A stretch of 64,000 nucleotides of DNA. It comes from Botryllus schlosseri (Eukaryota). Positions 16,038-41,375 of the stretch are shown here, one piece after another. The notes below the pieces were generated by a model. That model worked only from the letters and a program-made list of their open reading frames with translations. It made no database searches and was not told the DNA's origin. Each line of letters begins with the position of its first letter. Position 1 is the first letter of the stretch. The position numbers and the translations under genes are program-made. The stretch is taken from positions 5,270,001-5,334,000 of the forward strand of contig CM119372.1 in NCBI GenBank assembly GCA_051294905.1, given 5' to 3'.

Positions 16038-19000
16038 TCAGTCGCATGAGACGCTGGCTTCGTGGACACATGCGTTAACCGTATCATCGAAGGCCGTGCC
16101 CGCTGAACATTGGAAATGGTACGCTACTCCGTTGGAACAGCGGTAGTATGAGTGGCAGTCGACTTTATGATACCCACTCTCACCCGCCTGTCAAAATAGA
16201 AAACATTTTCCCATTCACTGTGTAATAGCAACGTATAAATTTCTATTAAGGACTCATGCAAAGCTAATGCGCTGGATTTTGTGTCAGCCGATTCAGAGGA
16301 GCAAATATAGTCGTACAGAATACGAATAGGCATTAAATTTGGCATTGGCACACGCGGTGGTGTTAAGCGAATAACTATAAGCGGACATATTTTGGTAGAA
16401 TAAGCAATGGTAGGCTATAATGTCACGGCTCATTCGTTGTAGCCCAAACGCGGTCAAGTCATGCATGTGAAATGTGAATTACACTCGAGTTACCCGAAAG
16501 AGCAGAAGCAGATTTAGCTTCGTCCAGTTACGGTCATCACAGAAATATATAATTATGGTTAGTTCTCGTATGCATCTCAACCTCGACGCTACTACCCCCG
16601 AGGAGTGTTTTTTAGTTTAAAGGGGGAAATACTCTAGGGGCGCTGCGATGCTATGGGCAAGAATATCGTACAACAGTATTCCAATTTAGATCTCACTGCA
16701 AATTTACTTCCGAGCAATTATTTGGGCTCGAATCTGATAGGTTTGAGCTATACCGGAAGCTGTAATGACAGCGTCCAGCAAATTTATATTGTTAATTAGT
16801 CAACAGGTCATTCGCCGACATCCACGCCCTAAATGTTTACGAATTCAAGCACGAGCTCGAAAAGCCCGACCCGGCTTCCACCTCTATCCCATCGTCTTTA
16901 ATACAGCACCAGACCATGAAAAAATATGAAAGGGAGCGCTGGAGAAAGAAATAGTTAAGAACCATCGATCTAGACCAGAGGCCTCAAACACGCGGCCGGC
17001 GATGGCATTTTGGAATTTCAAGTATTCAACAATATATTGAAGTGCCATATATCTTTTTTAGATATAAGAACTTGAAGTTCACGCTAAAACGACTATAAAA
17101 TCATGGAAATCTTAAAGAACTTCACTATCACATCACTTTTAGCACTTTTAAAAGCTGCCATGCGTCACATTTCTAGTTCATAATGATAAAACATCACGCG
17201 TTACTGATTCGTGACTGAAAATTGTGATTTGGTTTGGTGCGACCTTCTCGTAAAATTACTCGATTTTTGTTTGACTGGGTGAATAAATAAAAATGACTCG
17301 AGTTGAGTCGTATCAAACGTTAAAATCAGAGAAGGAACGGTAACTTGGTCATCCTACGGACACAACGATCTATGAAGCTGTCATGGGAACTAGTAATGTA
17401 TTAAAAGGTCGTAGCTTGCGTTGCGTATGGTAAATAGCTATAAGCATTGGTATTCTGTGACACACGTGACGTATAGATGGTTACATGGTGGGCGTTGTTT
17501 GTTCCCTTTATCCATATTGTTATCGGTGGCGAGTAAGCTGTAGCACCAATGAATGCTTCGCCCATTGAACATTTCTATTCCAGTGGTTCTTAACCAGGGT
17601 CCGTAGACCACATCGGGGTCGAAGCACCACATCAGGGTGTACGAGATGCATTGTAGAGTTAGGCCTATATGCTGTGGAATATTTTCTTGGCCAATTTATG
17701 CAACTGGAAAATAGTCTTCGCTCTACGCGCGATTTTATGTGAATAGCCGATACTTATCACGACTACATCAAAACCAGGATTCGGCTACACCACTCAAATG
17801 CTTTGATATCAAATCAATCTTCAGTAGGTTTTCAAATATTCTACATGAAATAGTGGCACGTCAAAGGTTCACTAGCTGCAATACTATAACCCGATAGTTT
17901 TACGATGTCATGATGCATCCTCTCGCATGATGTCTATAACTCATTAATTAAAAAAAATTATGCCCGGCACAGAAACAATATTATTCAAATATTTGAAAAT
18001 GTGATTTTTTTCGTGTCAAGCGTGAATAGTACAATAGTAAATTACATTTCCTCGATGTTAGTGGGATACATGCCTGCAAGGTCCCGTCAAATAGGGCCTA
18101 CGTGGAAATTATACATTGAATATCTCTATTATTGATGCTGCGGCCCACGGCGTCATCAAAAACTAATAAATTGGCCCGCGAGGACATTTGAGTTTGAGAC
18201 CTCTGATCTAGATTATCCAATGTCAACCTCGTTCTCATGTCCCTAGCAACACCATTGGATCAAGAATCTCACCGCGCATTGACTGTTCTGACTTGACGTA
18301 GACGTTGTGGAAGTTGAAGTTGAAGTGGTACTCTTGCTGGTCTCTGGCGCAGTAGTAGTTGTAGTTGTTGTAGTAGTAGTAGTACTAGTAGTAGGGGAAC
18401 TTGCACCAGAGTCTGGTATGGTGGAGCTTGCCGCCGTACTTGTAGCAGAGTTATCGCCGTCCTGTAATAACAGAACAAATATTCGGAAAAGCAAAAACCA
18501 GAGAAGCCGAAGCAACTACCATGGCCATGCAACTACTTACCCTGTAGCCAGGAGGTGGCAACACAGAGTCCACACCAATTGCAACGTCGGCACATCCGTA
18601 AAACTCTTCTTGCGGTCCCTTGCCCAGGCCGCAATCGTTTGCGCTGTCGCATCCCCACGAATTACCTAAAATAACATCCAAATTTCCGAATAACAAACGC
18701 GCATGAATCTCGGCAGTCGCTGCGCGTTGATAGAAGTGGTGACATCTTGCTTACCCGTGCGATATCTCCATTGCAGCACGCACTGATCGCATGTTACATC
18801 GCTCGGCAATTTGACCTGAATATGGTAGTACCCAGTTTTGGGGTTTTCATCTGTAATGTCGTATTGGGTAGTATAATCATTCGTGACCGGAAGCAAGTAT
18901 CTGAAATTTGGGCATCGATAAATTCGACCTTTGGTCAAAAGTATATTATATATGGAGCCGCAGGCCTATTTTTCAAACAAATGAAAATGATGATCCCTGT

Positions 19001-22000
19001 GTATAGTCAGATCGGATTTTAGTATGTCTATGAGACTGATGAACATTTATACTCACTGGTTCAGGCAATCGCGCGTGATTACACTGGTCACGTCGTCCCA
19101 TGGGCAAAGTCGAAATTCGAAGAATCCACGATGATGAGTTGTTATTTCGATCGTAACGGATATCCAAGCACCTGCTTAGAAATAACGATTTCAGTGCAGA
19201 ACTACCAACTACCTTCATACATACTCAGGTATGATAAAAAAAAGTATATCTCAGCGGTTCTTACCATTACTAACATGGGGAGCATTTACACTAATCTGCA
19301 AGCCTTCCCGAAAACCTGAATATTCGCTAAAACTACCAAAATGCGTATCAAATACATCACTGCATATTACTGGTGCACAAATTGAACTAAGCGGCAATAG
19401 ATTGTCGTAAGAACATATTCAATAAAATATTGTTTTCACGCAAATCAAAAACATTACAATGAATATTTCTTGCAAGTCACTGCCACTTGTGCCGTCTCCT
19501 TTAAGATATCAGTTCAGAAATCCTAGGCTCTTCTTTGGAAAGGACTGTCATGTTGATCACAGCAGCATGATACCAATTTCGCAATTGCAAATGAGCATAA
19601 AATATTGGAGATAGAATTACCAGTTCGAAAGGACAGTGTTTCGATGTCGGACTACAATCTCATCTGCGTATATACGCCGCTTCATACGACGTACCACCAC
19701 AAGAGTCGCAATTCCACTGATGATCGGCGTAATTTCTAGAATCCAATGATAGCCAAAACGGGTGTGTTATCGAAAATAGAGACCTCCATGTCTAAATTAG
19801 TTGAGCGTGTGTCGTCACCCCCAGAGAACCCCTGCTACCAGGGCCGTAACTGCCGCCCCCACCCACTTCCCAATTTGGAGGGCGAGATCGAAGGGGACTC
19901 AAAATCATTTCGAAAATCAATATAAATTAAAAAGTGTTTACGGAAAAACGATACACCTTCAAAATTTTATGGAATTGAATGTCTACTTTTTAATATGGGT
20001 ACCCTCCGCGCCCCAAGAAAAAAATACGCATCATTTATGAAAAAAATATACATTTCGGTACCGGCCATCACTGCTCCACGACACACCAAGACTTATGAAG
20101 TTTCGGCCAACATGCGACCTCGCGAAGCAGTGCGTTACCAAATAAAACCTTGACCTAAAATAACCGCGGCATGTTGACTGAAAGCATCAATATATATTTA
20201 GTCCATAGGCGCCTAGCCGGGGCGGAATAGTCCTCTGCTTGGTATTCGAAGTCACCATCGCCCTCAGATCTACAGGTAAATCTGATCACGTGGGCTGGGA
20301 GAGGGTGAAGAATTATTTGCAATATATGCAATTACCAATATTATAAACCAAATTGATATAATTTTTTCGCGCCTCGCACGACTACAGAAAGGGTGACATG
20401 GGTGCCTTAAAACGCCTAAAGCTTTTTTGTACTGTTGCCCGATACGACGGGGGGTCTGGGGGGCGACGCTCCCAGAAAATTGGTATATGACCTAGTGGAG
20501 GATCAAGAACAACGTTTATTTGGGGGGGAGGGCTGCCGAAATAATGATTCGGCCCTGCCTGTGACTGACTCAGTGAACCCCGCGTGATAGGGACACCGGT
20601 TAAGAACTGGACTACAATAATTCTCCAGACTTAGGCTTGAGGTCGAATAAAAGAGTGGGGAGTTAGGAAATTGTAGCGTAAGTACACACATAGCTCCAAT
20701 AAGTAGTGGAAAGAGATGCTGGTATGCCGAAAGCCAACGAATGCCAATTGCTAAAAGAATAATTTCATAAAATATTCATCTTGTTGCCGACGAGGCCTAT
20801 CATATAGCGAAAATATACTATGGCAAACAACTAGAGCTACTATTCGCACCTTGCTGGTACTGACGAACGATGATTCCCTTCGCGTATGTTCCGCCTGCGA
20901 CATTTTCTGGGTTCGCCGCATCATAAGCATCGCCACATACGCCGCACATGCCCCCGAGTGAAGCTTGATGCTGAAAGTTTAAGCGAGGAATATGCTGTTT
21001 TATAACGAATTTCTATTACGATTACATGGGGCTTATAATCCATTGAACAAGCATTCTTGTCAGCTATTCATACCGATAAATACTAATCTTCCCATTGACG
21101 ATGCTGAATGCACACTGTAGGATCCAGCAGGATAACAGATTTCATATTCTTGGAACAGTTTGTCGCATTTACCATTTGAGGTCAAGTTTTTATTATGATA
21201 GGCAACAATTCTGCGAACAGAGCTTATACGCGAAGGCATAGGTAGTTAGGCTTGCGCAATAATCGACTTTTCCGAGATTGCTTATGAAATTTGATTCGTG
21301 AGGCCTTTTCTTTGGCCTATGTTGACCCCGGGGTCACTCATGACTGCCCATGCTTATGAATCCGATATAGGATGTCACTATTCAGACTTCATAATCTAAC
21401 TGTTATGATCATTGAGTCATCAAGTACAGACATATCCATTTCAGTCATCACCACGATCTTTTCGCCTTGGCACTGTTAGTGTGCACTGTGCAGATCATCT
21501 TGGCTACTGTTCAGCGGATATATGTCTAGTTTTCCGATTGACGAAATAGTCTCGTTCTTTCCCTCTCTCCTGCTCATTCTTTAACCCACTCAAAGCGGCT
21601 AACGACACCCTAGTCGAAATCGTGTGTTTCGAGCTCAAAATCGTATGTATTTCTTTGTTAGTGAGTGAAGAGAGGCAATGAATGTCCGATACACCACGAT
21701 GCCAGTGACTATTGGAAAACAGCCTAACGAAAAGTGACACCCACACCTCTGTGATACTGACCTGAGCCCCACCGCAGAACAGTTGATTATCATTGTAGTT
21801 TGGTTCAATGATATCTTCATAGGGTGCAATCAAGGGATTGTCATCATTAATGAAACGCCAAACCGATGAGCGACCGGGTGGGTCCATCAGTCGACCATGG
21901 CCCTCAACAGTTGATTGCCAAGAAGTAAAGAATAGCGCTGTAATTTAATCACTCACGTTACTCGACCAGCGATAGGTATATAGATAGATATCTTACCGAG

Positions 22001-22030
22001 AACAGCAATTGTAAGCATCTTCACAGACAT
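16038..22030 (-). CDS. AA15-type LPMO, paralog 1: signal peptide + LPMO domain + S/T linker + CBM14; intact
   Basis: Eight phase-consistent exons: 22030-21997, 21937-21762, 20970-20850, 19171-19057, 18900-18755, 18665-18541, 18461-18273, 16187-16038. Protein: MSVKMLTIAVLALFFTSWQSTVEG|HGRLMDPPGRSSVWRF...NYNDNQLFCGG...CGVCGDAY...GGTYAKG...EITTHHRGFFEFRLCP...CDQCVLQWRYRTGNSWG...PQEEFYGCADV, poly-Thr linker, then six-Cys CAAGESGYHKVDCHSYYRCSNGVAYHFQCSAGTAFDDTVNACVHEASVSCD*. Mature N-terminal His, second His and ExF motif are all present. Confidence 0.95.
16976..18205. mobile_element. Non-autonomous hAT (Charlie/Buster-type) element in the last intron of LPMO paralog 1
   Basis: TIRs CAGAGGCCTCAAAC / GTTTGAGACCTCTG. 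TSD ATCTAGAC/ATCTAGAT matches 7/8. It contains fragments of other MITEs (GACTCGAG block, CAGTGGTTCTTAACC at 17581). Confidence 0.85.
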
Positions 22031-23179
22031 TCTTATTCCAGACTCTATACCTCAATGTGAGAAACGGCCGCACGCTGTCTCAATATATAGCCTGGGTCTG
22101 CACCGGGCAACTACGATATTTGTGTTACTAACGCATTTCTTAGCATACACCAAATATTTATATCCATTGTGCTTCCGAAATACTCGGTCCCTTTGAGCCA
22201 TCCCATTTATCCTGTAAAAAGTTTTTTTCCGGGATTTTGACCATCTACGCGCGATTACGATTTCGCATTAGTCAATACAATTTCTTTACTTGGTTGTGGA
22301 CATAGTGATTTAATAATAAAAATGCACTGTGTCCTGGTAATTTGTTTGTGACTTCCATTGCAAGCAAGCATTAAAAGTAATAGCGTATACCGTTGAATAG
22401 ATGAAACAGAAGGAGGTTATGCTGACTCCATATTTACACCGTAAGAATTTACGATCATATGACTTAAACGCAATGAAATTGAAGCACCATTAATCGGTCG
22501 TAATCTGTTGACCAGGAGAACTTATTGATCGGTCTCTACAAAGCAACATATCGTGAGAGCGAGATCAACAATTGTGTATATTTATTTGATTACTTGGGTC
22601 AAAGCCCTTGCTCGTACCTGTGTATGTGTACCAACCACTCTGGCATTTCTTACATTCATATGCAGGACGGACGGACGTTTATTCTATAAATAGCAATTGC
22701 TATATTGTCGCGATGATAGATGTATAATTGTATATATATAGGCTGCATGCGATGTAATAAATTGTGACATGAAAATATACAGTTTGAGCAATGAACAAAG
22801 AACACAGTCGCTTGAACTGACAGTCGGTGTTAATATCGTAATTTATATTTCGGTTCCGCGAGAAAAAAAGCGTCTGCAACGCGCGGTCTCGAATTTCAAT
22901 ATCTCAGCACAATATTCAATCCACAAATTCGACCGGAGAAAAGGTACATTCCCGCCTGCCTGTCGGCATACAAACAGAACAACAGACTCTATACGCCAGG
23001 TGTCCCCTAATAACTTTAGTCTTGGGACCCCCATTGTTATAAATCCAACTTCTGGGGGCCTTGCTGCCCAGACCCCCTCCAGATGTAATTTTTTTACCGC
23101 TACTTACCCAGCTATCTACGTGGTCTGTTTGGTTGATCAGCTTTAGTCGCGTAGACGCGCAATGCGCGAAAATTTTCTA

Positions 23180-24530
23180 TCATTCATCATCATCATTGGT
23201 TTATTAGCAATTTTATCAGTTCAATACACCACAAAAAATGCGATACAATGAAAAGAAAGGAAGATGTCGAAGCGACTGGGAGTTGTCTATGGAATCAGAC
23301 ACCCACCTTGGCCTAGGCGATGTAAAGAGAAGGCATGCACACTGAATGAAAGGAAAGAAGATAGCATAGAAAAAGGAAGCGACAAGAAATAGGGCGGCAT
23401 GTCATGGGAAGCGAGATCGATAGGTCAGTCGTGGTCCGGTAATCTTGAGGATGGACTAGCTGTATTTATTTAGTAATAATTGCTTGTATTTCGACTTGAA
23501 TGTGGACATGCTCGTCGACTGCCGGATGGCCGGCGGGATACTGTTTCACACATCAGGTCCGGCATATTTGATAGAGCGATGATCTTTTCGGTCGATCATA
23601 TGATATTTGGACGACGTGGACGCGCGTGTGTTGTAGGCCTACTTGTGCGCTTTTGATTCAGAGGTAAAGAAGTCATTGAAATATTCGGGGCAGCGACCGC
23701 AGTGAAACTGATACATAAACTTGGCGATTTCTAGTTTCCGCATATCTTCTATGTTTAGGACGCCGAATCTCTTCAGCAGCGACTTATTGGATGGGCAGCC
23801 AGGCCCCTTTGGGGCCCTAGCTATGATTCGGAGTACTTTATGCTGTAGTTTCTGCAATGGCTTGAGTGCAGTTTTACTGGCAGCCCCCCAACAGAGGATG
23901 CCATAATGTAACTTCGATTGGATTAAGGATTTAAAGAGTATCAGAACAACCCATGCTGGCATGAAGCGCCTAAGGCTGTAGAACAGGCCGCACTTCGGTG
24001 ATAATTTAGTTTCTAGGGACTGAATATGAATCTTCCAGGACATGTTCAAGTCCAGTAAAACCCATTATCTGTGTTGGAAACGGGCAGACCAGCGACATTA
24101 ACGGTTAGGTTATTTTTTGAATTTACTGTCAGCGATTGGGATTTCGCGGCTTTTATGCAAAGGTTGTCCTGGGCCGTCCACTCATGGACTTTAGGCATCT
24201 GGTCACCAGTCAGGGCATCCAGCTCTGCCGTCGAAGATGCGGAAGAGAGGAGGTGAGTATCATCAGCGAAAAGTGTGGTGTTCAATGAAGAGGTTCCAAA
24301 AATGTCGTTGACATATAAGGTGAAAAGGACCGGTCCAAGTACTGAGCCTTGGGGCACACCACAGGTCACCAGGTGAGGAGAGGACAAGGTGTCTGAGATT
24401 GCAACCATTTGTTGGCGTCCAGTGAGGTAACTTTTCATGAGCTCAAGTTGTGGGCCCCGAAGTCCGTAGCGCGCCAATTTCGAGATGAGAATTTTATGAT
24501 CTACGCAGTCAAACGTTTTTTTTAGATGTT
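23180..24530 (-). mobile_element. 5'-truncated, inactive CR1/L2-group LINE (RT C-terminal half + 3' UTR)
   Basis: RT motifs LKKTFDCVDH, GVPQGSVLGP, LFADDT, then LHYGILCWG and YNTR...SIKYAGPDV*NSIP...FKSKYKQLLLNKYS* (native stop 23456-23458). A frameshift near 24050 and two premature stops are present. About 270-nt 3' UTR ends in (TGA)n. Confidence 0.9.
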
Positions 24531-25649
24531 GTGTAATAAGAGGTAAATACTTCCAAGTTAGCATGGACATCCAATTAGTGCCAATGAGTGTTTGAATAGA
24601 CGAAGAGTAGATTACCATCAGGAAGAAAGACTGCTGAAAATAGCAGCGCTAATGTATGCCTTATTAAGCGGACATATCCGCGAAGAAAATGGGTGCTAAT
24701 AGATCTTCAGCAATCCAAATATTAGTTACAAACCTCATCGTGTGTTTCATCATATCGTGGAACACAAAACAAACGAAACGAGCATCTTGTACTGGTCAAA
24801 GTGGCCAGCGTGTCGAATCGAACAAAAAGTATCGATATAAAAGTCATTTCAAAACTATCTCAGGTGGCAGTACAAAATGAAGATCTAACTTGTTCTATAA
24901 AGTACATTTGGTAGAGGGACCACAAACTTTTAACAGTTAATAAGAGGTGCATATTCTTTCGAGATTGCGGGACGCAACGCAGAATGACTAAATGACACTA
25001 TGGGCGATTTTAGAAGATATATTATATCCAGTTTCCGTGTTACTGGGGCTCTTTATGATAATATCAATCGTGAGATTATATTTTCATCTGCCCCAGACAC
25101 GCAGCACACACGCAATGTAAAATGTGATATACAAGGCAAAATGCGACACAGCTGCGACACCAATGTGTTGCGGGTTATAGTCCGATTGAGGTCGAATCCA
25201 GAGTTCCTACCTAAGTGTTGGGAGTTTATCTAGGCTCCCCCTCGTCATCTCATCCGCGTAAGCGGTGTCTTATAAAAAGCCTAGAAGTGGGCCGTGCTAC
25301 AAGTCGGAAGCTACCAAATAAAATATGACGAATATTGACCTAATGTAAATGACGATAGTAGTCGACAAACACCATGAATACCACATGGATACAATATAAC
25401 CACTTGACAATTATTATTAGTATTGTTAAAAGTTTACAGTGGCACTTATCACCGGTTAAGGTCGTATATTCCACTTGAGTAAGTATAGCGCAAGTAGGCA
25501 AATCGTTTTTGAGTATTCCCAGAAAGTAGTACTTCGTTACTGACCAGCACTGTGTATTCGTATCGTACTTGATCAGACAGATGTTACAATATAGCCTTTT
25601 AGGCATCTCCAGACATATGGCCAACTTGCCTCGTTCACATTCCCCATGG

Positions 25650-26935
25650 CAGAGGTGGTCAAAGTAGTCAAGAAAGTTACTCAAATAGAAGTAAAAGTAG
25701 CGACGGAAAATCTACTCAAGTACAAGTAGAAGTACTTCTTCCATAAGCAACCTAAAACTACTTGAAATAGAAGTAGAATCGACTGACTTTAAATCTACTC
25801 AAGTAAGTAAGTTGTGAAAACGATCGTAATGCGTTCGCATGGATAGTCAAAAGCTCTAAATTGAGTTATGCGAAAGGTGCAGAGCTTGGTTCATATTGAT
25901 GCATTCCTGGAGGTATCCAATTTTCGACAGCATAAGCGTTCGTCCGCATGATGGGATGAAAATGATAGTATTGATGTGGAAATGCGATACTAATCCTCTG
26001 CTTACTCGAACAGCACGTTTTAGAAAATATCATGGTATGGCACCCTCCCCCATATTATACGGCCCGGAGTTTAGTCGGAGAGCGATACGGAGAAGCTGTA
26101 TTGGATACGGTGCAAATACTTTGCGCGATTAGTAAACGTTAATAAAAAAATATTGTGGATCGTCAAAATGCCATATTGTGTAGCTTTATTTCCGGAAATT
26201 AATGGCATTACTACACTTCCTTTTATACTTAAACATGTGTGTTCTCAAGACTAAAGAACTGATACTATAATTAGAACTCAAAGGAAGATACTGGGAATTG
26301 AAAGTGAAGTATAAATACATACTTCTAAAAGCGGAAAATGTATTTCATGTCTTTAGTTCAGAAAGTTTCAAATGCTGTATGCTAAAACAGGTCTAAAGCT
26401 GAAAAATAGTCGGAGCCCATTTTTCCAGATTACGACACGTCATGGAATGCTAGACTACGATATGATAAGTAAATGCTAGATGGAGAAACATCAGTTTCAA
26501 ACGTTTTAATGGGCCATATATACTGTGGCGAAATATTCCATATGTGCGACAATGCAGCGTGAGCGGGACCACGCAACCCGCTACCTAAATTATATTCGCC
26601 GATACTTTCGTGAAATCATATTGGTCACTCCATATCCAATGTGCGCGAAGCCCGACGAAAATTGTGGGCTTTACTCAACTTTTCTGAAAATTAAATGTTG
26701 ATATACTCCGTGAAAACAGCCTCGAAATTCCTCAGGTCATCTTTCTGATTTTAGGATTAAACTACTTCTATTTGACCAACTGAAAGTAGCGAATAGTAAG
26801 TAAGTAGATCACAAAATATTATGAAGTGGAAGTAGAAGTAGAAAAAATATTTCTACTTGAGTAAGTACCACAAGTAGAGGAAAATTACTTGAGTACTTCA
26901 AAAAAGTAGAAGTACTTCGTTACTGACCACCTCTG
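25650..26935. mobile_element. hAT-like non-autonomous element with AGTAGAAGT-rich subterminal repeats; possible transposase relic
   Basis: Termini CAGAGGTGGTCA / TGACCACCTCTG, with no clean TSD. A frameshifted T-R-W-N-x-x-Y-D-M-I-like relic lies at about 26430-26470. Another right end of the family is at about 25530-25552. Confidence 0.6.
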
Positions 26936-27274: not shown

Positions 27275-27866
27275 TGATATTCCTGGTTATACGGTTGCTC
27301 GTTCTTTTTGAGAACAAAATACATTCTCCGACATGGTATTCCAATAACTCCATGTTTGAAGAGCCAGGTTAATTATCACTACTGCTCTTACACATGCACG
27401 ATCAATTGTAATCAAATCAAGCATACAGTTGGCATTACAATGCGCTAATGTTTTTGCAACATGAAGGAGAAATTACGCTCTTTTGGAATCAGAATTATAT
27501 CCAACCTTTGATTTTTGTTGCAGTAGCGGACATTCGTGGTGTCGCCTGCTGGGTGTCGTAACCTATTTTATTTTATGTCATCACAATACTCAATGATATA
27601 ACTTTGCCATAAATGAATGATTATGAAGTCATAACGTTTTAATGCCTGTATGGAGAGATGTTGGTTGGCAATAAAAAGGAGCAAGGACTATGTAGGTTGA
27701 TTTAAGTATATAGAAATATTGGGCTAAATATGGGTCACTGTACTCTAGGTCCAAGAATCTTATTGCTATTTCTGTTTTTCTAACTAGATAAAAGAATTCA
27801 TTCTCTTACGGAAGGAATAGACGGTGGTGTTATCATATCAACTCCGATATGTGTAATGTTTAGTGT
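27275..27866 (-). pseudogene. Decayed partial duplicate of the 3' region of LPMO paralog 2
   Basis: 27810-27850 encodes IGVDMITPPSIPS|GTAAGAGAATG (paralog 2: IGDDMITPPSTPS|GTAAGAGAATG). 27506-27562 and its flanking intron match the linker exon 29019-29111. About 27275-27390 matches the intron at about 28805-28915. No CBM14 exon copy was found. Confidence 0.7.
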
Positions 27867-28490
27867 CTGCACTGAAGGATATGTCTCTTGGGTCATTGTT
27901 TGAATGCAAGCTCAATATAGAAATGTGTTAGTGCATACTACCTGATCCGTGTCATAATAACAGTAATCTAATATTTTGTGGTAATATGTTTCGTATAGAT
28001 TCAGGACGATATCACAACCAACTAAATATTTATCATTTGAATCACCATAACTATACCGATGCTATAGTATAACATCGGCGTTGTGACTTTGCCCGGCGAA
28101 ATTTTGCGACACAATTAATGTGAAGCTCTTTGAGCATCAATTTCATCAAATCCTAACTAACAGAACCACACACAGAACTTACAATTCTTTCCAGTCCAAC
28201 TCAGAACTAAACATTCCCAGACGACAACAATATAGCTGCGGATAAGCACTGGTAAATTACATCGTGTTAATACTTTTAGTTATTACAGAAGATATTGTCG
28301 CTCGACACAAACGAAACAACCACCAAGTATTCTTGACCTTCCTAACTTAACAGTCTCAGTCGCAGTCCCAATACACACAAATCCGAATGCAACATACTAT
28401 GTTTAATTCAGATAAGATGCATGAACAATTGAACATGTAAGTATCGTGGGTTTGTGTCGTTTCAGTCATATGAGATCGTCCTTGGTGCAG

Positions 28491-31400
28491 TTAATTCTTC
28501 AGATTGTCTTTATCTAGTACATATTGCAAATGTAAATATCTTATTCTAAACCCGAAGGATGTGTATCCTCTCCTCACCCCACAAGGTGGAATCACGTTAT
28601 ACACCCAATCGCATGGCGGCATCCCGTTTTGACCGACTACCAATCCCGCCGGACAGTCGTTAGCAATCCATTGCGAATGTACACACCAATAGTAGCTGTA
28701 GCAGTCCCTCGACGAAAACTCACCTTCCTTTATCATGAAATAACGGAATAGTATTTCAATCAAATGCGCATAGATATATGATCGAGCTGCGTGCGTACTA
28801 ATGCAATATATTTCTGGTTCTGCGTTTACGCGCTTTTGGTAATGACAAAATACATTCTTCGACATGCTACTCTATACTTGAAGGACGATTCGGGTAGATG
28901 TCATTACTGTTCTTAATTAGACTCGATAAAAATTGGTCATTTTACGTGCAGAGTTGATATTAAAGTTTCCGACATGAAGCAGAAATACAGCTCAATCAGA
29001 ATTCGGAATCCATCCTACCTTACATTTGACAACATTTGATTCTGTTGTTGTTGTCGTGGTGGTCTTCCGAGTTGATGTCGATGCCGGCGACTTTCTTGTC
29101 GTTGTTGTAACCTATTTTTTTTTTATGTAATCACAATATTCAATGATTTAAGTGTGACCTTAATGAATGATTATAAAAGTCGCTATACGTCCTACAATAA
29201 AAATAAGAAAAAATAAAAACGAAAATGATATAAACAGAAACATTTGAACATTTGGCAAGATTCGTTGCACAGTGACTGTACTGGTACTCTCCCAGGCCGA
29301 TATGAGCTGATTAGCATTACTCATGTTCTCAGTGTCAATAATATTTCTCAGATATTGGTTACGCTCACTCTTACCGGATGGATCTGTACAGTCTGTAAAC
29401 GATTAGTAGACCTATAATATACTACATATGGATACTTAACAATCCTGAAAATTCACCGCCCGTTCGTGACTTACATAATGTTACCTGTGATTTTGCTGAC
29501 GTAACTTACTGTAACTATGAAACACAACAGGCTGGAAACCAAATTTCATTCTCTTACCGACGGAGTGGACGGAGGCGTTATCATGTCATCTCCGATCGCT
29601 ACGTCCGCGCACCCGTAAAATTCTTCCTGTGCGCCACAGCCGATGCAGCCTACTCCATCAGGACCAATCCCCCACGAATTCCCTTTTTTATTGCGACGAA
29701 AAGTGTGTGTTTATCTTATGTCCCCAAATAAACCAATCAGGTGTTCGGAAATCTATCGCTTTGACAATACAGGTGAAAATTTTGTGGGATATACATATTA
29801 TGCTGATACTCTAAATTTTAGATAAATATACCTTTCTGGACGTTTGTAGGCTCGCCACGTGTTAGTTATATATACTTAAGTATAGTACCAGAACCGTAAC
29901 AGCACTTCGTCAGCCCTCCCCCAAAACGTTGGTCTTAGGCTCCCCATAGGGTGATAAACCGAACTTCTGGGGGGCTTTGCCCCCAGACTCCCCTCACTTT
30001 CTACGCCTTTGTCCTGTTGTTTATCATCTACATTGGATAGTATATTCATATTGAAATGCAGCAGATGCAATATGAATATACTATTTAATTGTATATTGAA
30101 GTCCTGTACCTCCAAGAACATCTACATTGGGTATCAGTCTAGTCAGCGAGCATGTATTGCCCAAAAATTCTATAATTCATGATTGAATCGATCAATATAA
30201 TCGGGAATTGCATATATATTGCTATCAATTTTTATCCTCTCTCTGCTCACGTAATCGGATTTACTAGTAGAGCTGAGTGAGGTGTGTTGGAAAAGGTAGG
30301 AACCCGAAATAATAATTATACATCTTCGGGGGTACCCGTTGGTATAATGACTTCGTTACATGATGCTATTTCGGGACCTCCCATCTGCTGTGTCAAAAGA
30401 TATTGAAATCGCCCAAACGTACTAAACTTAAAGACGTGCACGATTTCCAATTGGTATTTCTTTACTGACAAAAAATATTCCCTGTGGGATGCCATTTGTC
30501 TTGTGGGGCTCAGATTGCCAGGATAGGGACATTCGGCACCAGCCATTTTTCGGCCTATGGACAATTAAACATATATGTATATTGTAGGGATGGTGTGAAC
30601 GTGACGTTCACGTTCACGTTCTGTGTGTTAACCGCAGAAACCGCAGAGGTCCACGTTCACAAACGAACCTTGGTAGTTCCGCACTGTGAACCTTTTTCAG
30701 ATATTACGATTTTTGACGTCATTATAATATCTATGGTTAAAATTTATTGCATTTCAACGGCGGGTCATAGTCTATGCATGACCCAGACAACATAAAAAAA
30801 TCAAAACTAAACGAACATGCACCTTGACAATTTTAAAAATTTACTTGCTTTGTTACGAAAGTTTGCTCGAAATACCCAGCTTCCCGTTTGTGAATATTTC
30901 GTGAATCTCTGCTGTGAGCTTGACCCGCAGTCACACAACATCAAGAGGTATAGTCAGAGAATGATGCTTATTCAATCAATCAATGAAATTGATATCGTTG
31001 TCTAATGTGAAAAAATATTGCAGGGTATATACTGTTGTGTAACTTGTATGGGGTAATCTCGGTAGCAAGTATAGAAACCCATTTTACACTCTGCTCAATA
31101 TCAAGGTAACAATGCTCAGGCGCCGAATACATTGTCCGGTCTGGCCTAGACCGTCGAAATTGTTGACAAAGCGACGGAAGACATTGATTTTATGGGATTC
31201 TTATATTATATAATTTGATTGCACCGTGCAGTTGATACATTTGGCGACGTTTAAAAAGTCAGTATGTACTTCATCATTGCGACATAATGCGGCCTGAGCC
31301 GTCGCTTTAGGTATCGTGTACTGTACATTAATATTTTACTACACTGAAATGTAGGGTTGGAATTAGCAATATGACGTCACGAGGTTCACGTTCGCGTTCA

Positions 31401-33963
31401 CACGCCCCTCAACGTTTCAGAGGTTGACACCATCCCTAGTATATTGTACACATATCGAAGTTTTCGGTCAGCACAAGGGCATAGTCCTTTTCGGCCAAGG
31501 TCTTCTCGCTGCCGATCGTTCTGGCGCACTTCTCGGAGTCGCATGTTACATGGCCTATAACTTCATATGTCTTGGTGCGTCGTGCAAAGCGCCCATTTCT
31601 ATAAATCATGCGCATTTCTTGTTGGGGGAAGGGTACACAATAATCAACATATTTGACAACATTAAATTGCGCGCAGTGCGGAAAAAAAGTTTCATAGATT
31701 CCCAAAAATATACTCTTTGATTTATGTTAATTCACGAATCAATTTTGGCTCCCCTTCGAGTTCGCCCCCCCCCCCCGCCAATTGGGAGGTTTAGGGTGCG
31801 GCAGTTACGGTCCTGCATAGTACAATTCTATTTCAAGAGTATTCTCACCTGTGTGATAGCGCCATTGCATCACACACTGACTGCATTCTAAATTGTCAGG
31901 TAGTTTCACAAGAAGTTCGTACACTTTCTTGCTAGGTGCACCCTCTGGCAAATAATATCTTGTTTGTCCCGTTGCCGTAAATGTGAGTAAATTGCTGAGA
32001 CGACAAATGAGAGGAGTAGCATTGTATATTACGAGAGCTTATTTTTAGGTAATATTACCTATTCAGGCAGTCGTGAGTAGCTGCATTAGTAGGGTCATTA
32101 ACTGGACATATTCTGAATTCGAAATATCCCTTGTGACTGGCGGTAAGGTCAACTCGAACAGCGATTGTTTCCCCTGATGTAAACTAAAGGTAAGGTTCGA
32201 AATACTCTACAACCGTTGAAAAGATATTACCGATCGCGTATTGAGCCACGATGATCCCTTGAGCATATTTTCCACCTGCTTCGTTCTCTCTACGTCCGTC
32301 AAAAGGGTCCCCACAAACTCCGCATTTGCCGCCTTGAGACACCTGATGCTGAAACAACGCTCATATACTATTAGTATTGGTTGTAGTTTTGATATGGCTC
32401 CCTTGCAATATGATTCGATTCAAGCTAGTAGGCCTACATATAAGCTTTTTCCAGGAACTGCTTGCAGAGTTTGTAGAACATCATTGCATTGGTATTTAGA
32501 AATCAAGCCAGAACAGTTTGATTTCGCAGTAGCAACATGCATATTGAAGTAGTTGTAAGTTGGTTTGGCTGAACTTCGCTGACTGCGTAATCGCGTCTGG
32601 CTTTTAGATCCCCATGTCGTATGCTGCATGACAATTCCAGTCTCTAACAGGCCTCGGACGACACAGCGAAATTCCAGTCAGCTAATTTGAGTGGTTACCA
32701 ACCTTTTTCGACTCATCGCACCCTTATCAAGTTCGACGCAAATTTTCGGAACCGAAAAAAGAGGACATATAAACTTGAAATTTTATACAACTAAACTCTG
32801 ATCTCTGTTGAATCAACTAAAAATCGATATTACCCCCGAAAGACCCGTCTCCACATATAACACTGGTCAACACATATTTTTAGGCGGACAAAGTAAGAGT
32901 GGTTTTGGGAGTTCTTCGTTGGCTCAGCGGAAAATTGTCCATTTACAAGTCAAAAGAGATGAACGTATATTGACAAATTCGATAGCTATATATTCCTCTT
33001 TCATCTTGGTAGAATGACGAATTGGTACAGGAGAAAATATATTTGCGTCGTGCAAAAGTGCAATTTTTAGGCTTGAGAAACTGCTTTTTTATCAAACAAA
33101 GATCTCGCATAAGGTCATGTTAATATTGATGGAATAACTGAGAACGACATGAGAGTTCTTCATAGTCAATTATCTATTTAGGCGCAGTATAAAAGTAGAA
33201 AAATCAAAGATTTACTTCCTACCAAGTGAAATATTCAGAGTGAATACAGTGATTTTCGGCTTTTTTAGGGATTTAAGTATCTTCTTCTCTAGAGCCAATC
33301 TGGTAAAACTAACGTGATATTCGTAATCAGCAACCTTGGAAACCCCAGAAACGACTACTAGATGTTCTGTCAATATTTTTCACTCTGTTATCCAGTGTAA
33401 TTAACGGGGCTAACCTTCTTTTTAGTCAACTTTCGAGTCAGATCCAACACAACTCGTTTTTCACCAGCATTTCATGCCGATTAGTTAAATAATTAAATAT
33501 ACCCGTTCTAACATTCCCCCTATCGCCCCCTTCTTACGCTTTTGCCCTCCAATCGGCCGTTCTTTATCTGCCCCCCCCCCCCCGTTTCTCAAAATCTCTC
33601 ACTGGGGAGGGAGTATCTGCCGCGTTGGGAACCACAGAGCTAATATGTTCGAAATGCTTTCCATTCAATTCAGTTTCTACCTGGAAGCCTCCGCAAAAGA
33701 GCTCGTTGTCATTATAATTTGGTACAACTTGAGACTCGTACGGTTTAATCAGCGGGTTGTCGGTAAACCTCCAAACGGAAGATCGACCCGGTGGCGATAT
33801 CAGCCTTCCATGACCGAAAACCAGAACTGGCGCGATAACCAGCACGATGCAGATTCCTATAAAACACGAGACATTGATTTTGATTTTGCATACGCTGTTA
33901 TACGTATTCACGCTAAATGGAACGTAACCAACCGTAATTCAACTGTAATTCGCGAAGTAGCAT
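28491..33963 (-). CDS. AA15-type LPMO, paralog 2: signal peptide + LPMO domain + Thr linker + CBM14; intact, exact C-terminus uncertain
   Basis: Exons: 33963-33933, 33856-33681, 32348-32231, 32173-32059, 31994-31849, 29682-29558, 29111-29019, 28727-28578 (GTGAGG donor) or read-through to the stop at 28491. Protein: MLLRELQLNYGICIVLVIAPVLVFG|HGRLISPPGRSSVWRF...NYNDNELFCGG...CGVCGDPF...DLTASHKGYFEFRICP...CSQCVMQWRYHTGNSWG...GCIGCGAQEEFYGCADV...KCKEGEFSSRDCYSYYWCVHSQWIANDCPAGLVVGQNGMPPCDWVYNVIPPCG. Confidence 0.93.
30585..31438. mobile_element. hAT-type MITE (TAGGGATGGTGTGAAC family) in an intron of LPMO paralog 2
   Basis: TIRs TAGGGATGGTGT / ACACCATCCCTA. Perfect 8-bp TSD GTATATTG. Contains GTGAAC/GTTCAC repeats and is colinear with 46209-47176. 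Confidence 0.9.
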
Positions 33964-35712
33964 TGCTGGTTTCGATACGTGTTGTCTGTTGTCGTTTTGT
34001 CTGAAAAAGGCAAAAGTATAATATTTTAAACTGCAGGACACGAGGTTAGTCTGTCACACATATTAGCCACACTTGGCAGCCCCCGAAGTAAAGCTGTAGC
34101 GTACCACACTTATCATTATCGAATTTGATCTTAGCACAAACGAATACCGCCTGTAAACTACAGGGCGAGGAGGAATCTTAGATAAATTAAATAAAATTGC
34201 ATTCCCTTAAATTATGCCCTTTTGCACACAGGGTCGCTGGAACAGAACAAAGGATGAAGCACCCTGCAGTAGGTATGGATTTCGCCTACCTTACTGTCTT
34301 CAGATGGCGACACCGTTCTATCGACGATAACGCAGAGACCGCTATATATGTAGCCTGCTAGATGAGTCAAGGGATAATATTAGAATGTAACTGCATATGC
34401 GTTGTTCTGTCAAACATCCGTGCCCATTTTACAGTAATTGAAATGCGATATACAGCTTGAACAATTTGTTTCCGACGGTGAGGAATGTGACGAATACATA
34501 CGGTTTGTACTATATGACAAATTCGATGCCTCATACGAATTAGATTCAAATTTTTAGCCATAAGCGTTATCCGTAACAACCAACGCTTATGCATCTTTAT
34601 ATTATAACGATAGCGAATATGGAAATGTAAGCTTTACTGTCGTATGATGCGTGTATTTAGTCACCAATGAATGAATTATACTTTAAGGGAATGTTAGGCA
34701 CCGCCTAGGCGCCTAGTACGTTATCACAATATATATATTATAGGCAATGCTGCCTGATATCCAGGACGAACCATAACATTTTATCCTCAAATTTTTGTCT
34801 AATCTTTCTCACCGATCCTGCAGATGAACCTGTACTTTATAAATGCGCGCTGTGTCCCTGCGAGCGACTGGATTCATGTTATAATAAATGGGATCGACGA
34901 GAGTTTATGCACCTATTGCTTGCAATATATATATATATATATTGCCCCTATTACCTGCCCCTATTACCTGCCACTATTACCAATATAGGCTATGCATTGG
35001 GTATTTGTAGATCCACGCCCCACTACAACTCCGACTCATTGCGATTGAAAATTGAGACTATCTCCACCAAGACATTGATATCAAAATTAGCCACCCTATC
35101 CATCGTGGACAAGTAAAAAATGTATGCATAACCGTAAAATTCCCCTGCCCCATGGTAGATTAACATAGCTATGGTCGATTTGTTAAAATGCTCGATTTTA
35201 ATTGCTGAGAGTATGACCTGGCTATAATATGTTCATTATATAGTGCGAAGTAGGCCTATTGGATAAAAAAAAGTTGTTTGAATATTGTATTATTCGTTTC
35301 ACGGATATAGTATATGGAATGACATCATTCTGCGGAGGTCGTGCGATACCGGTGTTCAATAATTTCCTCCATTCTGTAGTTGATATTTGATCTAAAAGTG
35401 CAAGAATATTTCCACGAAACCGTTGATGTCACCGGAACGAAATTCTCCATACCCAGCACGGTGGTTCCACTGGCTTGGTGAGTGTGCGCAAGCTCGTCAA
35501 AAAGTAGAGGGAACATTGGTTGTAGCCTACTGCTTAAATGCTTAAATAGCCTGAATTACTAACTATCCGTACAATATATATGGAAAACGCAACTGTCGTC
35601 TGTTGAACTGTCAGTCAAGAACTACACAGGACGTTCGTATCAGCCAGTTAAGTATTTTGTAAGCCGCCATCCGTAGACCATCCGTATACTATCGAAGTGG
35701 ACCCGTTAAACA

Positions 35713-35865
35713 AGTGCTTTGGAGCCGGAGCCGGGGAAAGGAGCCGGAACCCCGGAGCCGTGTATTTTCAACAGAGCCGGAGCTAGAGCCGAAGCTCGGA
35801 ATAAAATTCTGATGGAGCCGGAACCTGAGCAGGAGCCGGTTGTCTGAAAGTAGCTCCTGATCCGA
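35713..35865. repeat. GGAGCC(GGAGCC) repeat cluster, probably the subterminal region of a hAT-like MITE relic
   Basis: About 9 GGAGCC/GAGCCG units in 150 bp after CAAGTGCTTT. No partner terminus identified. Confidence 0.5.
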
Positions 35866-37741
35866 TGTATTTCATAAGATGCTATATACTAATACTTTTG
35901 GCTGAATTCACAAAAATTTTCGGTAATCGTTCAAAAAATTAGGAATTGTTGCCTCGTTGGCGCCACCTTTTTTAAACTAAAATGTTTCAATTGTTCATGT
36001 TCAATTGATCATACATAAGGCGCTAAACCTCGGTATGCGAGATATGCCGTGCATACTCCGTATTTACTGTATTGTGGAACATGGTTATTCGTCATACCCG
36101 CAATTTCGTCATCAGCACAACAATGATAGAGCGGTTCGAAAAATATTGATCACTATTTATTTTACAAAATAGGACGGGTGCTCATGTGAGCTGAGCAAAT
36201 TAACTAATGAGTAATTAGGGGATAAGACGAAGCGATGCTAGAGTAGGGTTACCATATTTCTGTAATCCAAATTCCGTACACTCTTTAGCGCCCACTACTG
36301 GATTTCAAAATGAGTTGTGACGTCACACTAGCAAAGCTTTACTCATAGACCAGAGGTGGTCACGATGCGGTTCAGGAGTATGTGGCTGTGTGTTGTGTAA
36401 CCGGGACCGAAACCACTTTTTTCATCCCCATCCCGCCAAATAAACAATGATTTTGAGCCCACCATAGAGTAATCGATGCCACTTTTTTTTTTTTTTGGGG
36501 GGGGGTTGCTGTATGATTCCATATGCATCTAGTCGTTAAATTGTTTTGAATGAATTCTGTCAATAATATTGGTTGTTTCATATATTACTATATAGTTACT
36601 ACTCTACGCCCACATGATCAGAGTTGGCGGTAGAGCTGGTGGAGGATGATGAATTCGAAAATACGGGGAGCGTAATTGTACATCGCTAAGTCATGTTCAT
36701 GTCCCACCAATAAGATTGTTTATCAGCCTTATGCCGGTGCGCACCACGGAGCTTTATAAACACGCCACATCCAGTGGTTTCCAACCTTTTATGGTCGCGA
36801 CTCCATCTCCAATTTGAAAATGTTCCGCGACCCAGATCAAAATTTGACGAGCTGATTACTAAAAGAAGTCAGCACCTTTGCCCAGACTTACCTGCGGGCT
36901 GTTTTGGAAGCTGATTACGTTCAACATGTTCGCAAACCCCAGAATAAAGGCAAACGACACCCACGTTTGGAACCACTATCTTTGAATAAAGAATTTTAAC
37001 GGCCTGAACGATATCTAGGAATATACCGTTCTCGTATAATTGCCATTAGAGTTATTTCAGTAAATGAAGGTTGTTTTTATTTATATTTTATTGCAGTTTT
37101 GGCGAGGGTGGTAGTCCCCATATTAAAATTAATAAATGTGATAGTAAATCGCGCGCAGCGCGAAGAAGAATGTCATGCATCAGCATAAATATTCCCCAAA
37201 ATAATGTTATTATGTTGATTTACGAAAAAATTATGAGGCCACGTCAAAATTCCGGACAGTTGGCATATTTTAGAAATTCCTCACGGACGCTACTTTGAAC
37301 AGTGAAATTCCGGACATGTTCAATCATACATCACATGCGCATGATCGTGAATAACTACAAGAGGTGTCATTTTCGTAAATATATTCAGTTGGTAGGAGAG
37401 CTATTTCAACCAGTTGCTTGCTATGGCAATTAAAGGTGATAAAGGTGATGTGAACATACTCCAAACTGCATTCTACTTTACACAATACAAAGTGTCAAAA
37501 GCAAGTAGCTGTGCCTTTAAAACTAGTAAGTAGAACTTGTATAGTAGTCTAAAACATATCCACTGGAGTAAGTAATGCAGGTAGGCAAAACCTATGCTTG
37601 AGTAATCCAAAATAGTGTAAGTGCTTCGCTAGCGACCGCTTCCGGAAACAAATCATGATATACGTATTTATAGATGACTCCTCCTGTAACACAAAACAAA
37701 TTGAACTGACGGTGCATTTTTCTTCTCCTTCCGAACTTCAC

Positions 37742-40700
37742 CGGGTGGCAGCGACGTACTCGTTGTTGGATTTATAGCAGTGATCGGTGGTGACTTGGTC
37801 GTGGTCGTTGTCGTAGTGGTGGTCTGTTATTTGTTTTTAATACTGTTTTGTTGGTCGTATTTAGGTGATAACGAAATACAAGGCGTATTTTGGTTACAAG
37901 TGGTTTATTACCATCCCACCTGCCCATCTCCAATTGCAATGTCTGCACATCCAAAGAATTACTCCTGCGGCCCGCATCCGACACACCCAGTACCATCCGG
38001 GCTTTTGCCCCATGAATTTCCTAACGAAATTATTCAGGATCGCTCGTTACTTGATTGTATATTTGCCGCTTCCATTTCGAGATAAAAACAATTAAACAAC
38101 GCATTTCATCCCTAGCTCGAGATATGCTCTGCCTGTTTTTTTTTTGTTGTTGTTGTTTGTTTGTTTGTTTGTGTGTTGTGGTCTTCATGGTGTTTGTCGG
38201 CTACTACGGTCATTAACACCAGGCCGATATTCTTCGTTTTTAGTTCGTTAGCCGCCGACTTGCAGTGCGGTCCACTTGTAGGCTTTTATATAACACCGCC
38301 TACGCCAGGGTTGGCCAACCGGTGGCCGTAGAAGGAAATTTGTGCAGCCGTGGCACGTAATTAAGTTAGTATGTGTTGTTGGCGACCGTCGACTTGAAAA
38401 TTGAATTTACGAATTGACTGCCAAATTTTCAAGAGATTTTAATTAGCCTATTTTGAAATTTTCTTCGCAGGGTTAGGGGTTCGTACCCCCCCCCCCTTTT
38501 CAAAATCATCAAATTTGCTGTCGCATCGGCGACTAACACAAATGACGAATTCGATCTACCCGTCATCGTGCGCCTCGAAATCTTGGATTGCACGATACCT
38601 TGATTGATACCTCGACATGGCGACGCTTGTAGGACAATGCAGTTTTCAGATACACATTGTCTTCCATGATCTACGCCGATAAATAACTTCCTTGTGTAAG
38701 TTGCATAAACAATTACAAATTCAAATTAAAAACAACCCCATAACTATTCGGTTGTTGAGTGGTAACGTAAGTAGCTTTCTAGAATCGCCGTAAAATATAG
38801 GTGTGTAGCGTTATGTTACGCGGAATACTTGAGAAGTCGATCAATACATAGATTTTCGGAATCAGCGCGACAATTTCATTTGAATAATATCAGTGATGAT
38901 AAATTCTAAGTAATTTACGATGAGTTGCGCTATCACAGGTGAGGCTTGGCCCATCTGCGCCGCATCTGTGCCTTAACCCTCCTTTTGCGCTTTATATCGA
39001 ACAATAAATATAAAAATTCCGTTATTTTGGAAAAAGAAATGCTTAAAATCTAATCATTCCTAAACATCGATAAAAATACCAATAATCATTGAAGGTCTCA
39101 CAATTTTCCCTCGCTCATCCCTGACGACATGTGAGGCACTGCCTCACTTGCCTCCCCTAACCCCACGTCACTGACATATCACATCCTGCAGTGGGTATGT
39201 ACTGCTGTAGTGACCATGTTTGGCTCATCCTGCGTATGTGGGCAGAAAAATATGGCGCACACTGCGAATCCCATACATCAGTGCTACCAATACGTCACGA
39301 ATTTTCAATTGTGACATAACAGTTGATTGACATGTATGGCCCTTTGAGAAATACAATTAGAAATACCGGGTCAATATGACTTTTCGGTCGAAAAAGGTTC
39401 CCGACCCCTGCACCATACCGACAATCCTGATGGGAGGACAAGAAATAACAGCATGTTACAAGGTGAATAATTACAATCGGCCCACCCGAAAATACATCAT
39501 CGTTTATAACTTGCCCTAAATTTTTGAAAACACACCCTCTACCGGTGAATGAGATCACATAAGCTGAGAAAGGATAAATGTTTGATGGTAATACGTGAAA
39601 CTACGAATATAATTTACGAAATTCATCTGTGAATCTGAAGCTCAGCGAAAAATGGATATGTACAGTTTAAAATGGGTATTTGGCGTTCATTTTGTTCATT
39701 ACGAACTATGCCACATGACTAATCGAAATGAGGCCGTGAATAGATTGGCCACCCCTGGCCTATTGTTGTTGTTGTTGTTAGTACTTGAATATGATGATCG
39801 GCTACTATGGCATTTTACACCAGGTCTGAAGAATCTGAAAGTTCGTTACGGTTACAATTCTCTGCCGATGACCTACCCGTATGATATCGCCATTGGAACA
39901 CGCACTGGGCGCAACCGAAGTCGTCTGAAAGCTTTACTTGGATTTTGTAGGTGCCAGCCTGCCATGCGTTTGTGGATAGGAAATACTTGGTGTCTCCGTT
40001 TTTCAGTTTCAGAAGGTTTCTGCAAAGTTGTTCAACAATAGCTTCGCACATCGATTCGACATCAAATTGTGATAAGGACAAGAAAGGTCAATACACGCTA
40101 TATTTTATAGAGCCTATCCGAGTCCATCAACTCTTGTCTGCAATATATAGGCCACATCACAACCACTTGGGCGGTTTATATGGCGTTTAGCAGAATCAGG
40201 AGGCCTTAAGCCATGCGTACAGTGACTTGGATTATTTGCTAGCCAAAATTATACTGATGGAGGAGCAGGACAAAGCATATTAACCACACAAGTACATAGA
40301 TGCGCATGCGCATTGCGCATACACGGCACGCACGGCACGGCATACACGGCACGCACACACCCGTCAAGGCATTCCCTGGTGGCACGTCCGTTGGGGTATG
40401 CCAGCGGGTACAGCCTGAACTCAAAGTAACCCTTGTGGTGGGCGGTGATTTCGACGGATACGGTGATCATCTCACCTGCAAAAGGTACACGATTTGTTCA
40501 TCAATTCGCTCGCGAGTTATTGGGTTAAATTTGCGACATTATCTTCGTCGTATTTCCCGACAATGATTCCCTTGGCGTACTTACCGCCCGCTTCGTTGTC
40601 TCTCGGTCGGTCGTAAGGGTCGCCACAAACACCGCATTTCACACCGACTTCAGGTTGATGCTGAGCGTTAAAAAAAGACTGAATGAATTTGGATGCCAAT

Positions 40701-41375
40701 ATCGGATAATCAATTGAGGCTCTTATCGTAGTATAAAATATTTATGCATAAAAACGCGAAAGGGCAAAAGCGACGGTTTTGGTTCTCAGCCTTTTTCTCG
40801 TCTCGTACCATTTCGAGGTTTCATGATTTGGTTGCATACCAACAAATTAACGAAAAACTACTTTATACTCGAAATGTATCTAGGATTATTAACATGGGTG
40901 GATTAGCGGAGAAGTCGTCCGAAGCACGAGCTAATCAGCCCCTATTATTAATAACACACACTAACAAGGCAAAATTAATGCTATTTTTTCTTTTCTTTTT
41001 CTCCACAAGCTGATCTAGGCGAGGTGCAACTAAATTGAAAGACGCATGAAGTATTTATATATGCATTCGATGAAGACAGCTCTTGCATTAGAAAAAAATA
41101 CGTTGAAGATTTGTGAAAACAGTACTTTTGCTTCAAACGAAATGCATTTACTAGATACCATCTGCAAATGGCTTTCCGTATTACTAGTGGGCGTCTTACC
41201 TGTCCCCCGCAGAACAATTGGTTGTCTCCGTAGTTTTTCACTATTTTGGACTCATGCTGTTTGATCAGAGGGTTCGTGTTTACGAATCTCCACAAAGATG
41301 ATCGACTGGGGGGATCAATCAATCTACCGTGACCCTCGACGGTGTTGGACGCGTGTAGCAACACGACAGCCAAGC
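37742..41375 (-). pseudogene. AA15-type LPMO, paralog 3: pseudogene or null allele
   Basis: Exons: 41375-41200, 40660-40543, 40475-40361, 40019-39877, 38020-37920, 37823-37742; the first four sizes are 176/118/115/143 nt, matching the paralogs. Lesions: donor GT>AT at 40542 (intron retention hits TAA); TAA in place of GAA at 37959-37961 (PQE*FFGCADI); conserved RLCP reads RLYP. No ATG exon or CBM14 exon found. Confidence 0.88.
38306..39757. mobile_element. Aged hAT element with nested fragments in an intron of LPMO paralog 3
   Basis: Termini CAGGGTTGGCCAA / TTGGCCACCCCTG. Flanks GCCTACGC/GCCTATTG match 5/8. An internal right end GGTTCCCGACCCCTG lies near 39410. Confidence 0.6.

Follow-up and report, generated by a model that had tools for sequence, protein, structure and literature searches.

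Most of what is known about lytic polysaccharide monooxygenases (LPMOs) comes from microbes and, in the animal kingdom, from arthropods. One of their families, AA15, was defined and found across invertebrates by Sabbadin et al. (2018, PMC5823890), who also noted AA15-CBM14 fusions and named tunicates among the taxa with AA15-GH18 fusions. Both cellulose and chitin are substrates of TdAA15A, an AA15 enzyme of Thermobia domestica (PDB 5MSZ). Its site is made up of His1, His91, Tyr184 and Ala89, the ten cysteines of AA15 are conserved, and CBM14 is specific for chitin (PMC5823890). In the Didemnum vexillum genome paper, an LPMO orthogroup was present in all tunicates studied and in no other chordate compared, and was filed under cellulose degradation from annotation alone (PMC8704543). 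NCBI annotates proteins with LPMO_10 and CBM_14 as 'uncharacterized' in Styela, Clavelina and Ciona. The existence of AA15 in tunicates is already known, and the locus described here adds well-defined members. It lies in a 64,000-nucleotide (nt) stretch of DNA, the whole of which is called the window below, and comprises two intact AA15-type genes with linker and CBM14, termed B and C, and a decayed paralogue, termed copy A.

The region very probably holds an old tandem family of AA15 LPMO genes, most likely in an ascidian genome, with B and C intact and transcribed, A decayed, and a small relic of the 3′ part of B. The family was delineated by translating all stop-free segments of the window and comparing them all-against-all, after which exon boundaries were read in the DNA and the pieces assembled. 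This comparison yielded three sets of paralogous exons, each colinear with the others and on the minus strand, and no fourth copy within the window. The DNA is eukaryotic, with a G+C content of ~41% and no long open reading frames (ORFs) in the LPMO region. Coordinates are positions in the window, and A, B and C follow minus-strand order. Catalytic exons are numbered with the 176-nt exon as exon 1, the start exon lying before it. The members of the family are laid out as follows.

16038 to 22030, minus strand: gene C, an intact AA15-linker-CBM14 gene of 351 amino acids and eight coding exons, in an open ATG-to-TGA frame.

22030-21997, 21937-21762, 20970-20850, 19171-19057, 18900-18755, 18665-18541, 18461-18273 and 16187-16038, minus strand: exons of gene C, of 34, 176, 121, 115, 146, 125, 189 and 150 nt.

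28499 to 33963, minus strand: gene B, an intact AA15-linker-CBM14 gene of 322 amino acids and nine coding exons, with untranslated regions running past both ends.

33963-33933, 33856-33681, 32348-32231, 32173-32059, 31994-31849, 29682-29558, 29111-29019, 28727-28578 and 28513-28499, minus strand: exons of gene B, of 31, 176, 118, 115, 146, 125, 93, 150 and 15 nt.

37742 to 41375, minus strand: copy A, an apparently decayed paralogue with exon-by-exon homology to B and C.

41375-41200, 40660-40543, 40475-40361, 40019-39877 and 38020-37920, and a Thr-rich linker exon at 37823-37742, minus strand: exons of copy A, of 176, 118, 115, 143, 101 and 82 nt.

27277 to 27848, minus strand: relic left by partial duplication of the 3′ part of B, in three colinear blocks 75-85% identical to 28808-29596 (blastn self-comparison).

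An earlier note, made from the letters of this DNA, had described three same-strand paralogues. The three colinear minus-strand exon sets bear this out, but only two of them are intact genes, A being decayed. The shared exon sizes given there (176; 121/118/118; 115; 146/146/143; 125/125 nt) are exact, in the plus-strand order C/B/A and with 125 nt in B and C. The same is true of the ends of the range, position 16038 being the stop of C and 41375 the point where the 176-nt exon of A begins. Intron phases were also said to be shared, and they are identical across A, B and C (1, 0, 1, 2, 1, 0). The introns of B and C are GT-AG throughout, and both intact genes open with a short exon ahead of the 176-nt one. 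The earlier note mentions neither these start exons, nor the minus strand, nor the disabling changes in A. The relic lies just downstream of B and contains a duplicate of the exon 5 end ('..DMITPPSIPS/VRE').

Comparison with known proteins supports an assignment of B and C as AA15-type LPMO catalytic domains, each ~200 residues long. The catalytic exons of B are colinear with the TdAA15A chain (5msz_A), from His1 through the axial-residue motif. Exon 1, searched as a three-copy profile, matched residues 1-34 (E 0.48), in an alignment that starts at residue 1, and was followed by exon 2 at residues 39-75 (E 4.4e-6), exon 3 at 80-114 (E 1.1e-5), exon 4 at 126-162 (E 0.022) and exon 5 at 165-193 (E 0.0016). 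The closest full-length homologue, Styela clava LOC120341781 (P0029), matched the same chain over residues 1-193, from His1 (E 9.8e-42). Among the matches listed, 5msz_A was the sole LPMO chain for the B exon queries, and no AA10 chain appeared for these or for P0029. In Pfam, exon 4 of C alone matched LPMO_10 (PF03067) at 25.4 bits, above the gathering cut-off of 23. Exons 3 and 4 of B reached 17.8 bits each against the same cut-off, over colinear parts of the profile (91-113 and 138-170). No Pfam match came from exons 1 and 5 of either gene, though both match 5msz_A. LPMO_10 was found in all ten full-length homologues scanned (69-95 bits over the full profile), of which two also carry CBM_14, and a profile of the 176-nt exon matched 879 proteins in a representative library. 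The AA15 identity proposed in the earlier note is thus upheld by LPMO_10 on the exons and by the colinear 5msz_A matches.

The predicted active-site features are in place in both intact genes. A putative signal peptide ends directly before His1 (..APVLVFG/HGRL in B, ..QSTVEG/HGRL in C), with a hydrophobic core and small residues at -1 and -3, the cleavage site having been judged by eye. The second histidine of the brace falls in TASHKGYFEF in B, aligned with QAPHIGFFEF (residues 88-97 of 5msz_A), and in TTHHRGFFEF in C and TAHHKGYFEF in A. At the axial position, B and C read QEEFYGCAD where 5msz_A reads QEEYRNCAD, with Phe replacing Tyr184. Phe is the usual axial residue in most AA10s. The position of Ala89 is occupied by Ala in B and by Thr in C. 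Ten cysteines in each catalytic domain align with those of 5msz_A, which correspond to five disulfides.

Between the two domains lies a Thr/Ser-rich linker of ~40 residues in B and ~70 in C, which is probably O-glycosylated. Beyond it, CBM_14 (PF01607) was matched by the last exon of C at 46.9 bits and by exon 7 of B at 26.6 bits, against a cut-off of 22.1. Both modules have six cysteines, with spacings of 11, 5, 9, 12 and 7 in C and of 9, 5, 9, 13 and 9 in B. The combination that the earlier note had ascribed to two copies, namely signal peptide, His1, second His, ExF, Ser/Thr linker and six-Cys CBM14, was found in B and C, and the CBM14 module scores above the Pfam cut-off in both.

Transcription was followed in four RNA runs labelled as the window's species, which were compared with 28450-34449. 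A single 1101-nt RNA contig from run X1 spans all eight splice junctions of gene B (8/8), each as CT..AC on the plus strand. For B, the contig confirms in RNA the junctions seen in the genomic letters. It also revealed two exons absent from the earlier note: the start exon, which holds the ATG and lies 76 nt upstream of the 176-nt exon, and the last coding exon of 15 nt, which follows the CBM14 exon after a 64-nt intron. Run X5, from a second study, contains pieces of several B exons with two joints; in run X11, raw reads cover two further B joints, with two reads each. Of the words in the gene C stretch, a fraction of 0.37 is present in X2 and 0.26 in X1, which fits transcription of gene C.

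The 5′ end of the B transcript has a feature of its own. The X1 contig continues for 88 letters beyond the first intron, 72 of which fit the genome, and the genomic match stops at 34000-34003 (minus strand), where there is a strong polypyrimidine-AG site (TTTTGCCTTTTTCAG/ACAAAAC). The ~16 unfitted 5′ letters, themselves unseen, would suit a putative trans-spliced leader.

Copy A reads as a pseudogene and not as a working LPMO gene, because it combines an in-frame TAA, an AT donor, a shortened exon 5, no start exon and no CBM14. The first two of these defects are placed as follows.

37959 to 37961, minus strand: in-frame TAA within exon 5 of A, in place of the Glu codon of QEEF(Y)GCAD that precedes the axial Phe; the codon is GAA in B and GAG in C.

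40541 to 40542, minus strand: exon 2 donor of A, which is AT; B and C have GT.

The only in-frame alternative donor for exon 2 of A is a cryptic G/GTAAGT at 40585, whose use would delete 14 conserved residues. Exon 5 measures 101 nt in A versus 125 nt in B and C. No ATG exon was found 59-76 nt upstream, the place it takes in B and C, or within 500 nt, and further upstream (>500 nt) there are only weak start-exon candidates. A search for a CBM14-like exon between 37900 and 34000 gave nothing better than chance.

The age and descent of the family were assessed from sequence divergence, phylogeny and intron positions. Amino-acid identity between the catalytic domains is 63% for A/B, 58% for B/C and 56% for A/C, and at the DNA level the blastn self-comparison finds the copies similar in one exon only. 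The duplications are therefore judged to be old. A maximum-likelihood tree pairs A with B (84/82) and places C among genes of Styela, Clavelina and Ciona savignyi (90/95). Tunicate sequences as a whole share a well-supported group with those of molluscs, annelids and brachiopods, from which the insect sequences stand apart. In the approximately unbiased (AU) test, neither a clade of A+B+C (p 0.12) nor a single all-tunicate clade (p-AU 0.48) was rejected. Since the free tree splits C from A+B while the AU test does not reject A+B+C, the split between B and C may or may not predate ascidian speciation.

Gene structure points to long residence. The Styela clava P0153 gene has nine coding exons of 25, 173, 124, 112, 146, 122, 138, 147 and 15 nt, with phases as in B. 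Four catalytic-domain introns and two introns flanking CBM14 coincide between B and Styela in a protein alignment; in C, all but the last of these six coincide as well. Two of these intron positions, with their phases, recur in the oyster P0176 gene (Magallana gigas). Because the intron plan and phases match Styela and two positions match oyster, the family is read as a long-resident animal gene, and not as a contaminant or a recent transfer. Local duplication of such a gene had been proposed in the earlier note, and the nine-exon plan and phases shared with the Styela gene, together with the two oyster positions, bear the proposal out. Its guess of a tunicate host also holds up: ascidians supply the nearest full-length homologues of like architecture, C is placed among their genes, the exon plan is that of Styela, and an all-tunicate clade is not rejected. 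No near-identical protein was found when a profile of exon 1 was compared with 1.8 billion representatives, or in a word search with the Styela homologue, and the best full-length matches are 40-59% identical to the window proteins.

Several points nonetheless weigh against this picture of an ascidian AA15 family with two functional members. The domain calls rest on single exons and on homologues. The exon model of gene C rests on its open frame and on GT-AG sites in genomic DNA, and the assignment to an ascidian, although the most likely one, is drawn from homologues and the tree. The predicted copper site differs from that of TdAA15A, with an axial Phe in B and C and Thr for Ala89 in C. Finally, biochemical, copper-binding, localisation or functional work on any tunicate LPMO was not found in the literature searched. 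The earlier note had suggested a little-studied chordate LPMO system, if the host were a tunicate; the family had already been noted in tunicates (PMC5823890, PMC8704543) and annotated in several ascidian genomes, so its presence in chordates is not new. The locus, with two intact, expressed and well-diverged AA15-CBM14 genes and exact exon models, is accordingly a curated example and not a discovery.

Two other accounts of the locus concern its genes as such. The defects of copy A might be assembly errors or alleles of the sequenced individual, in which case all three copies would be working LPMO genes. Ahead of its stop, A does retain both brace histidines and nine of the ten cysteine positions, its five catalytic exons are open apart from that one codon, and a polymorphic null allele in the sequenced individual could be the source of its defects. 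Five independent defects coincide in it, however (the stop, the AT donor, the 101-nt exon 5, the missing start exon and the missing CBM14), and this account is improbable. Far less probable still is a foreign origin of the genes, whether by assembly contamination or by recent horizontal transfer, the donor being an arthropod, a mollusc or a microbe. The grouping of tunicate with lophotrochozoan sequences, apart from insect ones, is what speaks for it. Against it stand seven or eight spliceosomal introns per gene, with positions and phases matching Styela clava and in two cases oyster, the host repeats within the introns and the retrotransposon fragment between the genes, the transcripts in RNA runs labelled as the window's species, and the single tunicate clade that was not rejected (p-AU 0.48). 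The introns already contradict it. A resident family with two intact genes and one decayed copy thus remains the preferred reading.

What the two intact genes might do can be sketched from their domains. The B and C proteins would be secreted, with the signal peptide cleaved immediately before His1. His1 and the histidine of the T-A/T-x-H-K/R-G-F/Y-FEF motif would then form a copper histidine brace, with an axial Phe (QEEFYGCAD). CBM14 would anchor the secreted protein to chitin, a flexible glycosylated linker would give it reach, and the reduced copper centre would cleave crystalline polysaccharide chains oxidatively with O2 or H2O2. We infer from the predicted proteins that B and C are secreted, bind copper and are active on chitin, and that their site of action may be the gut chitin barrier, food digestion or the tunic. 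From the CBM14 module, a role in chitin remodelling or digestion can reasonably be inferred.

That B and C act mainly on cellulose rather than chitin, in tunic remodelling or in digestion of algal cellulose, is an unlikely but serious alternative. Tunicates make cellulose, TdAA15A cuts both polysaccharides (PMC5823890), and the Didemnum paper files the tunicate orthogroup under cellulose degradation, if by annotation alone. The appended module of B and C, however, is the chitin-specific CBM14 (PMC5823890), and a cellulose-binding module is absent. It is very doubtful that the proteins are non-catalytic, serving as chitin-binding or structural proteins that have only the fold of an LPMO. No activity is known for tunicate members, and the axial Phe and the Thr of C depart from TdAA15A. 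This view must nevertheless contend with a His1 directly after the predicted signal-peptide cleavage site, and with a second His and disulfide cysteines that are kept in B, C and the aligned Styela and oyster homologues despite copy identities of 56-63%. With catalysis on chitin as the favoured reading, a broader idea can be put forward tentatively, and may well be wrong: tunicate AA15-CBM14 proteins could be LPMOs put to a chordate-specific use, acting on the gut chitin nanofibre barrier of the animal itself, or on the cellulose and chitin of its tunic during growth and metamorphosis, with the old paralogues B and C specialised for different matrices or tissues. If true, this would give chordates their first described endogenous LPMO function.

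The surroundings of the genes contain repeats and a few other ORFs, listed here with their positions.

23642 to 24648, minus strand: fragment of a non-LTR-type (long terminal repeat) retrotransposon between B and C, in two adjoining open stretches, the first matching Pfam RVT_1 (E 6.9e-18).

29850 to 31650 and 32650 to 33450: parts of B introns whose words reach depths in the thousands in the RNA contig sets, with many loose ends, and thus high-copy, transcribed repeats.

30588 to 31210: part of the B intron repeat, which recurs at 46212-46911 (region 46200-46900).

61265 to 62840: densely packed segments in inverted orientation, almost identical to one another (reaching 100% over 40 translated amino acids), with related copies at 5275-6285; they look like a palindromic or nested transposon family.

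10257 to 10838, minus strand: open stretch of 193 amino acids with a weak Pfam match to 'Protein moonraker' (KIAA0753; E 4.4e-4, below the cut-off).

14785 to 15630, plus strand: the longest ORF of the window, of 281 amino acids with an ATG start, just downstream of C on the opposite strand, with no Pfam match.

The moonraker match agrees with the earlier note, which had placed KIAA0753 near the locus. Beyond it, the long ORFs of the window gave only a reverse transcriptase.

Set beside TdAA15A, the B and C proteins share a homologous domain from His1 to the C-terminal strand, with the histidine brace and ten cysteines, and the motifs GGKCGxCGD and HxGxFEFRxC. They differ from it in several ways. 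The Thermobia enzymes consist of the catalytic domain only, whereas B and C add a Ser/Thr linker and CBM14. The axial residue is Tyr184 in TdAA15A and Phe in B and C, and Ala89 is replaced by Thr in C. Styela P0029 has an insertion of ~9 residues relative to TdAA15A, between WR and NYND, and the same stretch is present in B and C. The host is an insect for TdAA15A and a chordate for B and C. A further point of reference is insect AA15 (LPMO15) of cuticle and peritrophic-matrix turnover (PMC9156745), which is animal-encoded like B and C and is thought to act on the animal's own chitin. It belongs to a different clade from the window genes, and its moulting roles are without counterpart in tunicates.

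The nearest relatives are ascidian. Styela clava LOC120341781 and LOC120339509, Clavelina lepadiformis LOC143446325 and Ciona intestinalis LOC104265352 resemble B and C in architecture and in length (320-380 amino acids). The Styela P0153 gene resembles gene B in its nine-exon plan, intron phases and 15-nt terminal coding exon, and gene C clusters with ascidian LPMO_10+CBM_14 proteins in the tree. These relatives are only ~40-59% identical to the window proteins, too little for any of them to be the window's own, and the host is therefore not Styela clava, Clavelina lepadiformis or the Ciona species in the database. They also differ in setting: the window copies are in tandem, whereas each Clavelina and Styela gene examined has no further LPMO gene within 10 kb, so the tandem arrangement is not general. 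At the locus of the oyster AA15 gene compared for introns (L003 1-704, Magallana gigas), a second LPMO_10 gene lies ~2.3 kb away on the opposite strand, and local AA15 clusters thus occur in molluscs too.

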